From assembly GCA_010909165.1 (NCBI GenBank), contig VJWM01000348.1, forward strand, positions 1 through 48,575: a stretch of 48,575 nt of DNA, given 5' to 3'. The notes under the pieces were generated by a model that ran no database searches, was not told where the DNA came from, and saw only the letters and a list, made by a program, of their open reading frames with translations. Source of the stretch: Anthoceros angustus. Its lineage: Eukaryota > Plantae > Anthocerotophyta. Both the position numbers and the translations under genes were made by a program. Every line of letters starts with the position of its first letter. Position 1 is the stretch's first letter. Positions 1-27,419 of the stretch are shown here, one piece after another.

Positions 1-104
1 ATGTCAAAAGCAACATGCGATCGGGCACACCGGATCATCGGGGATGACACACGGAAAAGGCAACCAAGGAAAAATTAGCCGGGACAACGAAGAAAGAGGG
101 TCAT
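1..104 (-). CDS. N-terminus of PLE RT ORF (copy A), continues outside the window
   Basis: Homologous to 14638-14736 and 22052-22148. Confidence 0.55.
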
Positions 105-120
105 CGACAACTTACAAAAA

Positions 121-2029
121 TCACGAGTTTGATTCCCGTAGTCCACTAGGAGGCTTAGAGGTAGAAGAGGCCGGAGTGCGGTGCGTCACCATGTGTGTTG
201 GAAGGGCGGGGTGTCGGATCTGAGAGCTAAGGTTGCTAGCGGTGAATGTCGAGCCATAGGAGAGTCTTCTTGATAGTAGGGGCTACTGGGCTAGCATATT
301 TGTTAGAAAACCTATTGTGCATCATAGGGCCACCTTGCCTATTGCCACGGGTGCCTCTGGTGAGGACTTTTTGAGCTTGTCCCCATCGGACTTTGCTTTG
401 CGCATATAGGATTTTTGATTGGACCTCAACTCTGTTTCATCAAGCGATCGCATTCTTCCGTGAAGGAAGGAGGCGATCATTTCTCTATCATGAGTTTTCT
501 TGATCCGAGAATGCAACAAGGAGCCTTTGGGTGGGGTTAGTGGCAAATGCAGCGGCACCATCCAAAGATCATTTCACGTACATACATGAAGGAAATGTGG
601 CTTTCACACAATCACGGTTTTGGCCAGCATTCAGAATCTTTGAAGGCAAGCCATTGAACACGGAGGCTCGCCGAAAGAACTCATCCAAATCTTGTACCAT
701 GAACAGAGGGCTTGGTCAAACCGGATAATCGCCATTGCGGCGCCCTACCATCAACATTCAACAAATCTTGGCGGATGCATTTGATGTAAGGCTGAGCCAA
801 TTCCACCATGTTTTGTCATGGTCCTTCCCAGCCACCGGTTTTCGAGCCTTTTACCCTACACAACATCATCATCGATTCGGCATTTGGTAGCATCAAAGCA
901 AAGGCTGTTACGATTGCAAAACCCAGCCCAAGCCACATTTCCATCCACGGCCTTCGTCAAACGATGCCATTTCTTCATCACTTAGCCTACAAAGGACTTG
1001 AAAAGTTTCAGATGAAGGGTGCCAAGTAAGAGGTTAGAACCAGTCCACATCTTGTGGGAGATGGCAGCATCACCTCAATGTCCCTAGGTGCAACAAGAGA
1101 ATGGGACCTTTGCTCATGAGAGGAAACCCTCGCCAAATCATTGCCTTTGTTTCTTGTGTGGGCGACATATTCACGCATGAAGGTGCGGTCCTCCTCCGTC
1201 ATGTTGGCGGTGGGAAGCGGGATGGTTGAATCACAGCCCTCGTGAAGCATGGGCCGGGGCTCATCTTGACCCGATTGCAACCTTGAGCCTTGGCAATCCG
1301 AACTCTTTCCTCGTCCAAGCTGTTGCTTGTGCATACCGTCATTGACGACACATTGCTCCAAGTTACGCTCAATGGTTTGAAGAAGCTTCATCCCTTCATC
1401 ATCACAGTTGGAATTGGCAAGCTTGCACCAATCGTTGAATGAGAGGACCTCCGGCATGGGAGGGTGCCATCCATCACCACAACAAGCGACATCGGTGCTG
1501 CGCTATCGTGCAATTGAATTTCAGCATGAATGGAGGGGGGACAATGGAAGCAATCGCGACAGCGTACGAGAGGATCAAACCCGGCATGTGTGTAGCCCGG
1601 TGAATGAGGCGAGGAGAAACTCACGATTGCCACGAACACCAAGCCAATTTCCAACCTTAGTGAGTCAACACATTTGTGAACACCAGCATGATTAATCCAC
1701 AAGAGATTTGAGCTGCGGACTTTCTAAACCCACAAAGGTTGAAAGGATTCTTGGTGACCAAACCAAGAAACGACAAGATAGATAGATTTCCTAGACTACA
1801 TTGCATAAATGCATTTGCACGACCTAGCGGTCATTTCAAGCAAAGCTCATTTAGAGATATATTTTAAAATCCGATCGGGGAAGGATTTTCCGAAGTTCGA
1901 GACCATAGGTCTCCTAATTAAGCAACCCCATGTGTGAGATCCGACATCTGCCCCCTCCTTGGTATGAGTATATCACATTTGTAGCGTGCACCACGGATGA
2001 TTGTGTAAAGGCATGCAATGTGGCAATTT
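121..2029 (-). pseudogene. ORF1 of copy A, C-terminal part (disrupted by the Copia insertion; continues at 9145-~9420)
   Basis: ORF 1008-1457 and neighbouring fragments match copy B 14752-16600. Confidence 0.5.
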
Positions 2030-23780: not shown

Positions 23781-26742
23781 CTGTCTGCTTTCTCTCAAGC
23801 TACCGGTCTCAATATCACAAACCCCATGCATCCTTGCAGCGGATGTGCATCATTGCTTGCATTGTTTTCTCTAGGCTTCATCGTCTCAATCATCAAACAC
23901 CCACATGCATCCTTGCGAAGTATACGTGCATCAGCCTACATCGTTTTCTCGGGCCGCTCATGAGTCTCAACCATTACATACCTACAGATGCTTGCGGCAA
24001 GCAAGCAGTGCATCCACTTGATGAGGCGTTTTTTGGTCGCTCACTAGTCTCGGCCGTCTTAATTTCATACACATCCTTGCAACAAGCGGCGTCGTCCCAT
24101 CGATCGATCTCCATCATCACACCCACGGTATCATTGTCACCAATAGGCGCGTGCACCCTCGCATCTTTTCTCTCCAAGTCGCTCACCGCCGCATCACACA
24201 CTTCCTTGCAGTGACTACATCATTTTCTCATCAAGTTGCACCAATCTCAATCACTACACATCCTCATGCATTCGCGGTAAGCAAGCGGCGTGCGTTTATT
24301 GCCGACGCTTTCTCTCCGCGCCGCATCGCGGCCATCACAAGCCCACGTGCGGGTCGCCGCCACATCACGATCCAGGTTGTGAAAGGATTTGCGCGCCATC
24401 CCGGTCAAGTTTTAGATCGACAACCCGTCTGGATCCACCCATCCCGCCCATCCAGCCGTAGGCATCATGCTAATCACCACAGACACCAATTCCAGTGATC
24501 AGTGAACATCCACCGTGGTAGCAAAACCATCGGGTCGTCTCACCGCTTGCGGGCGCCACTTGTATGGCTCCAAGCCGGCAGTGCAAGACCATCAAACCAT
24601 ATGGTCATCATTCCCGGCAATCCATGAGCGATGGCGGCGGAGCGAAAAAGCAATCCTCCAACCCGTCCGATCAAAAGCGCGTCCAAAGAGGCCCGGTGAC
24701 ATCAATCGGCCCATGACCCCCACTTGCCCATAGTCGATCCTCGGTGAGGCGTCGACACACCTCTCCGTGAGACGGGTCACCAAGCAAATTCTTGGTAGTG
24801 CATGGTCATCCGTTCCGTTTTAGATCGACAACCCGTCTGGATCCACCCGCATATCCAGCACCCACCAGGCATGGCGACGTCGTGCTATGCACCGCACGAC
24901 ATCAATTTCCAGTGATTAACGACAAACGACCATCGTGGAAGCAAAACCAGTCGCTGCGGCACCACTTGCACGCGCCACTTTGTATGGCTCCAAGCACGGC
25001 AGCCGTGGAACCCTCAACCGAGATAATGATTCCTAGCAAGCAATCCATGAGCGATGGCGGAGGAGCAAAACCAGCGATCGTCCGTCCGATCAAAAGCGCG
25101 TCCAAAGAGGCCCTTGTCCTCGGGACTCCCAATATTCGATGCAATCTTATCAGATCAACGTACATCCAACCGTGGTAGCGATATGCAAAACTAGATCGAC
25201 ATCCCGATTCGCAAGCTTAAGCGAGCATCCGGTAGCACAATATCTATCGCATGCTATCTTGAAGCCATTCACATGCAATCTTGTGCTCGTGAGATCGTCC
25301 AAAGCGAGCCATACCACCTATTTTACATCATTCAACTGCGTCGTTGTCCTCCCACGCCACCGTCATTCCTTGCTACATGTATCAAACATCAATATCGGTC
25401 TCACAATGCGATCAAACCTACGCAAGATGCGATCGGATGCTTCACCTAAGCGGGACCTTGAGTCGATCCCAAAGGATGACGATTCCGTACATGCATCCAA
25501 TACGAGGCATCCGGACAAAAATTGCAGCGAACAACGACATTCATAGCCACGTCGACTGCGGAGCGAAGTATCTTGTGTTGATCAAACTATTTTGAATCCA
25601 AGACACAAACCCTAGCAATCATTGAGTCATCTATCCGGTGCTTCTAGATCATACCGAAAAACAACTTGAGGTTTAGAAGACTAGACCGGATGACCAAATC
25701 AAGGTCTAGCTTCTTGGATGCACAAAGATGGTGTTGGTCAACACCCTCCCCTTCCCTTCTTGACCACCAAAAGGGATCATCGGCTTCGGATCCTTGGTGA
25801 GACGGGATCCATTGCACATCCACTAATTCTAAGGTTGCATAGTGAAGTAGAAGAGGAGAAAAGGTTCAACCTTGGTAGCCATGGCTAGCTTGGGGAGGCA
25901 ACGCGACAAAGAGACCAAGGTACTAAGTAAGGTGATCACGCAAATAGAGGCGGGAGCAATAGAGAATGACAATCATCAAAGGTAGAGGCTAAGCATAGGA
26001 GAGGAAGGGAGGAACCCCAACCAAAGTTTGGAGGAAGGGATTTCATTGGGTAGCAAATTCTATCCAACCGCTCACAAGTTATATAATCCTATTGGGCAGC
26101 CATTCCTACCAATGATAACCCACAAGGAATCAACCCATCTTTAACAAACATGCACATAGGTCGATCCCTCATTTATAGCCTAGTAGTATATATTAAAAGT
26201 GAAACAAGGTCCGAGGTCATAAATGTACACATGGCCCATATGAGGTGTTAATTATAATATGCCCAAGTGGGTAAGGCACTATGTCCTTCTACCAATAAAA
26301 GGTGATAGCCATTGGAAAAAGGCAAGCATATTCATATTCTATTCACTCCATAGTTATCAAGAGTCTAATGGTGCATTTTTATGGGTTAGACACCTCTCTA
26401 AGGTCAAAAACAAAACATATGAAAGATACTTGTAAACATCACGCTTCCAAGTTTATTATCCAAAAAGACAAATAAAACCTGCATACATATTAGACTATCT
26501 TGAATTAAAATTTATCTCAAAAATCAAGGAAAACAACCATATTAGTAAGAAAATAATAAAGGGTAAATAATAAATAAAATCAATAAAAATTCCTTCACAA
26601 ATTAGTATTACGTAAACATTGAAGGAATAGATTTACTTAGTTCATCGATGGGATGTTTGGGATGGATAAACATCATTTAGAAGCACCAATCTATGGGCAC
26701 ACAAAGGGCAAATTCATGGATCTCATAGGAACATAACTCTTG

Positions 26743-27419
26743 GATAGATAGATGGATAGATAGATAGATAGATAGATAGATAGATAGATAGATAGATAGA
26801 TAGATAGATAGATAGATAGATAGATAGATAGATAGATAGATAGATAGATAGATAGATAGATAGATAGATAGATAGATAGATAGATAGATAGATAGATAGA
26901 TAGATAGATAGATAGATAGATAGATAGATAGATAGATAGATAGATAGATAGATAGATAGATAGATAGATAGATAGATAGATAGATAGATAGATAGATAGA
27001 TAGATAGATAGATAGATAGATAGATAGATGATAGATAGATAGATAGATAGATAGATAGATAGATGAAGATAGATAGATAGATAGATAGATAGATAGATAG
27101 ATAGATAGATAGATAGATAGATAGATAGATAGATAGATAGATAGATGATAGATAGATAGATAGATAGATAGATAGATAGATAGATAGATAGATAGATAGA
27201 TAGATAGATAGATAGATAGATAGATAGATAGATAGATAGATAGATAGATAGATAGATAGATAGATAGATAGATAGATAGATAGATAGATAGATAGATAGA
27301 TAGATAGATAGATAGATAGATAGATAGATAGATAGATAGATAGATAGATAGATAGATAGATAGATAGATAGATAGATAGATAGATAGATAGATAGATAGA
27401 TAGATAGATAGATAGATAG
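26743..27419. repeat. (GATA)n microsatellite, ~680 bp (~170 units), capping the PLE array
   Basis: Nearly perfect GATA repeats, directly visible. Confidence 0.99.

Follow-up and report, generated by a model that had tools for sequence, protein, structure and literature searches.

A head-to-tail chain of a probable Penelope-like retroelement with TATC/GATA repeats at its joints in Anthoceros angustus

We analysed a 48,575-nucleotide (nt) stretch of Anthoceros angustus DNA (contig VJWM01000348.1 of assembly GCA_010909165.1; hereafter the window, 48.6 kb), which contains a tandem array of a retroelement whose reverse transcriptase (RT) is probably that of a Penelope-like element (PLE), a type related to telomerase. 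Self-BLAST of the window revealed a single period that recurs three times in one orientation, with the minus strand as the sense of the array. Runs of GATA were confined to three sites in the window (12343-12397, 19790-19832 and 26743-27427), and a GATA pattern search returned 162 matches against 0 expected. Read along the minus strand, an unrelated flank is followed by about 170 TATC repeats, unit C, about 10 repeats, unit B, about 13 repeats and unit A. The array is composed of the following parts.

26743-27427, minus strand: long TATC tract of 685 bases, in blocks of 68, 19, 8, 68 and 2 repeats separated by four small interruptions; it lies at the 5' end of the chain and abuts the unrelated flank

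19833-26742, minus strand: unit C, 6,910 bases

19790-19832, minus strand: joint between the 3' end of C and the 5' end of B, 43 bases, about 10 TATC repeats

12398-19789, minus strand: unit B, 7,392 bases, the sole complete unit without a large rearrangement

12343-12397, minus strand: joint between the 3' end of B and the 5' end of A, 55 bases, about 13 TATC repeats

9140-12342, minus strand: 5' part of unit A

1-2029, minus strand: the rest of unit A, beyond a copia insertion; it leaves the window before its RT

Unit B displays the order of parts, namely a 4.6-kb 5' part, then the RT frame, then the 3' untranslated region (UTR). Unit C carries two private changes: on balance it has lost about 530 bases immediately ahead of the RT frame, where B has 14754-15383, and it has gained a 66-base insertion near the 5' end. 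Of unit A, only the 5' 5.2 kb are visible in the window. The 5' part of the unit contains no recognisable gene and yielded no Pfam domain on either strand. Within this region, a module of about 310 bases is present in two copies that are 74% alike, alongside an 84-base tandem repeat (16915-17105, 17504-17816 and 17926-18242); these repeats have equivalents in the corresponding places of A and C.

The ends of the units are sharply defined. The two visible 3' ends (B and C) are identical, with GAGTGGAGGG leading into pure TATC repeats. The 5' ends of the three units are near-identical, beginning (CA)AGAG..TTATG directly after the repeats. Both joints are polarised: repeats are pure beside the 3' end of the upstream unit and degenerate, with a CATC variant, beside the 5' end of the downstream unit. 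At each of the three 5' ends, that of unit C beneath the long tract included, the CATC variant lies one or two repeats ahead of the unit, and we read the short CATC-TATC stretch at the 5' end as belonging to the unit. The internal joints resemble each other in length (43 versus 55 bases) and in the pattern and order of their interruptions, and are unlike the 685-base tract. Because the flank abutting the long tract bears no likeness to the unit 3' end, this tract is not the tail of any visible element. Together, these observations confirm the anatomy of the array, that is, the unit structure, the orientation, the joints and the long tract at the 5' end of the chain. They also bear out the initial annotation of this DNA in its description of same-orientation retroelement units in a head-to-tail chain, of visible unit boundaries that fall in GATA (the runs occur solely at the equivalent joint positions) and of a sense strand that ends in (TATC)n and restarts after (TATC)n, as seen at every joint.

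The two visible parts of unit A are separated by an unrelated element.

2030-9139, plus strand: copia-type long terminal repeat (LTR) retrotransposon inside unit A, 7.1 kb, with 277-base LTRs (2030-2306 and 8866-9139), TG..CA ends and a 5-base AATTT target duplication

Its interior gave a weak RVT_2 match, and unit B provides the unbroken counterpart of the insertion site. The copia element is not part of the array element, and its insertion shows A to be a separate, older locus. The three units are distinct loci and not one expanded copy, since A holds the copia insertion and C the loss of about 530 bases and the 66-base insertion. The initial annotation had recognised the array, but had overlooked both the split of unit A by the copia element and the shattered state of the RT frames, which are laid out below together with the 3' UTR.

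12614-14736, minus strand: RT frame of unit B, as assembled, with many breaks; RT3(A) at about 13558-13514, RT4(B) at about 13275-13213, RT5(C) with YIDDI at 13135-13121, RT7(E) at about 12989-12945, then a helical thumb and a stop at 12616-12614

20029-21990, minus strand: RT frame of unit C, as assembled, with breaks at places other than in B; YIDDI at 20541-20527

12398-12613, minus strand: 3' UTR of unit B, 216 nt, AT-rich

The RT is encoded at the 3' end of the unit in a frame of about 700 codons, with YIDDI about 740 bases from the unit end. Rules for the core motifs of PLEs, whose source is reportedly Arkhipova 2006, specify Q..G..MG...SP for RT4 and RY[IV]DD for RT5. In both B and C, RT4 reads Q..G.PMG....SP and RT5 reads RRYIDDI, and by these motifs the RT is probably Penelope-like. 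In the assembled sequence, the distance from RT3(A) to RT4(B) is about 91 residues, a long spacing for an RT, although indels make this a rough figure. After RT7 come about 130 residues of tail and a stop common to B and C; this tail, or thumb, was predicted to be all-helical at low confidence (AlphaFold model of a 93-residue thumb, pLDDT 60). A PLE-type RT with RYIDDI had been assigned to each unit in the initial annotation. RYIDDI is indeed present on the minus strand of B (13135) and C (20541); the PLE type is a reading of motifs only.

Similarity searches with the RT were hampered by the state of the frames. Each unit as assembled contains private small indels about every 45 bases, and the RT frames of B and C are broken about every 15-30 codons, leaving no piece longer than 120 residues; searches fail because these small indels break the frames. 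Only two database signals emerged, both weak. The Pfam family RVT_1 matched the RT4 piece with an E value of 0.011, under the family cut-off. A protein language model gave a weak lead to animal clusters from the PLE-rich phyla Rotifera, Echinodermata and Mollusca, one of them with PF26215, while a second protein-atlas query gave no lead and a phmmer search of the PDB with two RT pieces produced chance matches only.

Downstream of the RT, about 100 nt of the 3' UTR of unit B (12418-12521) form a hairpin (z = -7.5), which is separated from the TATC tail by about 20 nt, and the fold of the 3' UTR is weaker in C (z = -3.1). A GIY-YIG domain C-terminal to the RT was found in neither B nor C, and a C-terminal nuclease is excluded because the frame stops about 130 residues past RT7 and the 216-nt AT-rich UTR alone precedes the repeats. 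No hammerhead ribozyme was detected in the array with Rfam, at the gathering score or at E values up to 10, or with a core scan, a result that leaves room for one hidden by assembly indels.

Elements with a comparable organisation have been described among PLEs. Naiad and Chlamys elements have a strong insertion bias for microsatellites and form tandem and pseudo-LTR structures, usually without a hammerhead (Craig et al. 2021, PMC8557442). Chlamys units measure 3.3-8.2 kb and contain tandem repeats, and PLE-X families, which have no nuclease, are present in Chara and Selaginella, while BlastP matches exist in mosses (PMC8557442). PLE-X elements carry a canonical hammerhead, and their N-terminal extension, which bears CxCX1-8C, is set off by an intron. 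The array shows the hallmark of Naiad/Chlamys, microsatellite insertion bias combined with tandem arrangement. It further resembles Chlamys and PLE-X in its occurrence in the green lineage including early land plants, in its long units with tandem repeats, in an RT that occupies the C-terminal end of the frame and apparently has additional length between RT3 and RT4, and in tandem insertion with a strong microsatellite bias in a group of which most members lack canonical hammerheads. With PLE-X in particular it would share insertion inside chromosomes without a recognisable nuclease. The target differs, however: elements in the literature target (CA)n, (C)n or a 28S ribosomal DNA site, as opposed to the TATC tract here.

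Other PLE groups are less similar. Naiad elements share the microsatellite preference, the tandem and pseudo-LTR structures and the missing hammerhead, and they have a DKA form of the DKG motif, for which a candidate lies upstream of the RT here, but they are animal elements with a clear N-terminal GIY-YIG with CCHH, a (TA)n target and much shorter units. The canonical PLEs with a C-terminal nuclease (Penelope/Poseidon, Neptune, Nematis and Hydra) differ from the array in the C-terminal GIY-YIG and the canonical hammerhead, neither of which was found here.

Based on these comparisons, we propose that the array stems from a PLE-type element closest in kind to Chlamys/PLE-X, whose family would insert into TATC/GATA tracts always in the same orientation, a reading to which we give roughly even chances. 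In this process, the UAUC-repeat tail of the RNA would pair with the 3'-OH of the GATA strand, which would then prime synthesis. The 3'-OH could arise from a nick, a break or replication if the element is truly nuclease-less, or else from a nuclease unseen here, and the CATC-TATC stretch at the unit 5' end could help the finished complementary DNA to rejoin the tract. The chain may have grown through repeated hits on the neighbouring tract, through a single event with template switching, by which PLEs usually form tandems, or through unequal exchange at a later time. Given the look-alike joints and the uniform full-length 5' ends, we lean towards template switching or unequal exchange over repeated hits.

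This priming-by-annealing model is testable because the repeat that follows the 3' end complements the would-be priming strand and the unit 5' end carries a repeat-like stretch. Microsatellite preference and tandem arrays in Naiad/Chlamys are already known, as are nuclease-less PLE-X in early land plants; new here appear to be the TATC target with its strict orientation, the very long tract and the host. The route by which PLE-X inserts within chromosomes is unexplained, and microsatellite bias and tandem structures have been named as the features of PLEs most in need of a mechanism (PMC8557442). The array thus offers a testable lead on the chromosomal entry of nuclease-less PLEs.

A telomere-like mechanism had been put forward in the initial annotation, by analogy with Athena and Coprina. 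Athena, Coprina and the Terminons likewise form polarised head-to-tail chains and have no C-terminal nuclease, and they share with the array a 3'-end repeat complementary to the would-be priming strand and a tract of repeats that lies distally, beyond the 5' end of the chain. The array, however, is non-telomeric as far as visible. Repeats of the TTTAGGG type were absent from the 48.6 kb, which agrees with the interstitial site described initially, and no hammerhead was found beside the 3' repeats. Because the features that define Athena and Coprina (a telomeric site, reverse-complement telomere repeats and an adjacent hammerhead) are all missing here, their fit is poorer, and the array element fits the Naiad/Chlamys/PLE-X picture better. 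From the mechanism proposed initially, the chain, the RT at the 3' end, the missing C-terminal nuclease and the TATC joints have held, and the telomere analogy is unsupported or unneeded. Its stronger claims, of integration without any nuclease, of a self-regenerating target and of a long tract made by the RT, found no support in the window. A head-to-tail chain joined by TATC/GATA does not by itself show telomere-like growth.

In the strongest version of this idea, a nuclease-less PLE would treat the microsatellite as a private pseudo-telomere: the UAUC tail would prime on GATA 3' ends, the RT would lengthen the tract by recopying the tail, and the landing site would be regenerated. Repeated tail copying would account for the 0.7-kb TATC tract. 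No enzyme is known to renew a GATA tract as telomerase renews a telomere. We consider this version unlikely. If true, it would represent a living intermediate between retrotransposition and telomerase-style repeat addition, inside chromosomes.

Several results weigh against integration of a Chlamys/PLE-X-like element. First, assignment to the PLEs is by motif because the homology searches found no relative. A 117-residue RT3 piece had 0 matches in a HMMER search of 1.84 billion representatives, the thumb piece had no match in a word-index search, and metagenome contigs yielded nothing by protein or by a degenerate pattern around the RT5 motif. Second, no hammerhead was found in the array, whereas the published PLE-X families have canonical ones. 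Third, the frames are so broken that the missing N-terminal GIY-YIG carries no weight. Finally, none of the three units is shortened at the 5' end and the internal joints are alike, as expected from duplication.

The last point corresponds to an alternative in which one TATC-tailed insertion was followed by tandem duplication at the DNA level, through unequal exchange or replication slippage, without further reverse transcription. It would explain why the two internal joints (43 and 55 bases) share their order of interruptions and are unlike the 685-base tract, why the three units have the same 5' end with no 5' truncation, and why the private changes form a star-like pattern, with about as many in A as in B or C. 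Because the internal joints are alike, duplication or one multi-copy event fits the chain as well as successive priming does. On the other hand, partial or full tandems are the normal product of PLE integration (PMC8557442), and similar joints could equally represent a tail copied from one master RNA. We regard duplication of a single insertion as possible, though on balance somewhat improbable.

Alternatively, the element could possess a nuclease, an N-terminal GIY-YIG as in Chlamys/Naiad that is possibly encoded in an upstream exon, together with a CxC-type finger that targets the microsatellite; the array would then be a standard cluster of Chlamys-type insertions. The 4.6 kb upstream of the RT are unexplained, and microsatellite bias is typical of the nuclease-bearing clade. 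Consistent with such an element, B and C each have a candidate DKA string upstream of the RT, and CxC-like strings are scattered in a copy-specific manner and in uncertain frame, with a CxCxxC about 1.6 kb upstream of the RT in C only. Against it, a search of every frame of every copy for a GIY..YIG pattern was negative, although breaks about every 45 bases would hide a 70-residue domain. Pfam likewise detected no nuclease in 30 pieces from both strands, but the frame breaks deprive this result of weight for an N-terminal GIY-YIG, and since even the larger RT domain was barely detected (E 0.011), a 70-residue nuclease would be missed. We consider the nuclease-bearing element distinctly unlikely.

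Among long interspersed nuclear elements (LINEs), stringent L2-type elements have a 3' stem-loop and a repeat tail, with microsatellite tails being carried by such LINEs, and R1-clade elements are specific for simple repeats. The array could accordingly derive from a LINE-like element with a stringent RT, in which the 3' stem-loop is followed by a repeat tail generated by RT slippage and TATC is the tail, not the target. A strong 3' stem-loop just ahead of a short repeat tail, the one-orientation insertion into a simple repeat and the generic RVT_1 as the sole Pfam match for the RT fit this view. The RT, however, appears to belong to another class, with RYIDD instead of FADD at RT5 and MG instead of QG at RT4. 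Moreover, there is no AP or REL nuclease such as LINEs possess and no CCHC region after the RT, where the frame ends about 130 residues past RT7, and full-length head-to-tail chains are unusual for microsatellite LINEs. The long TATC tract on the 5' side of the chain, which is not preceded by the 3' end of an element, is inexplicable as a tail. A LINE-like origin is very unlikely.

The differences between the units have a peculiar composition. In a comparison of all three units over 4,373 common columns, the private changes numbered 81-113 indels and 132-199 substitutions per copy. The transition-to-transversion ratio was about 1.1-1.3 and the indel-to-substitution ratio about 0.6, and the private indels were 1-12 bases long and occurred at about 2 per 100 bases per copy. 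A comparison of B with C over the first 500 bases counted 4 substitutions and 6 indels. The LTR pair of the copia element, located in the same window, differs by 18 substitutions and 2 indels, and because this pair lacks the indel-rich pattern, the pattern is special to the array. To judge from their spectrum, the unit differences look like unpolished consensus noise and not like neutral decay. In addition, a share of 0.35 of the 31-mers of unit B was present in one DNA run, which may come from another accession; this share is roughly what is expected if the private changes of B are absent from the reads. Dating of the array against the copia LTRs was abandoned, as the unit differences are unlike neutral decay.

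That the assembly expanded one copy into three is extremely improbable: the differences between units (small indels, low transition-to-transversion ratio) and the share of 0.35 of B's 31-mers would suit such an artefact, but the large private features (the copia element with its target duplication in A, the 530-base loss and the 66-base insertion in C) and the differing joints place the copy number at three or more even if the fine sequence is noisy. Should the private indels prove to be assembly noise, the copies may be young and almost identical, which would make them good experimental material; if they are real, the array is one more decayed repeat array. Possible unpolished noise in a tandem repeat would also matter for gene calls in repeats of this assembly.

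The flank of the array contains several further repeats. A 1.8-kb direct repeat pair (30171-31928 and 45958-47760, 84% alike) encloses a G-rich stretch, which has a GC skew of +0.3 over 30-38 kb and no Pfam match, and a second copia-like element on the minus strand (38395-45650). The latter has 265-base terminal repeats that are 95.5% alike and an integrase core match at 42551-43129, and its interior is about 69% identical to that of the first copia element in inverted orientation. The repeat pair and its contents may constitute a large, old, nested LTR-type element. The flank also contains a 174-base tandem repeat in about two copies (29389-29710) and an (ATGT) tract of about 51 repeats (37663-37860).

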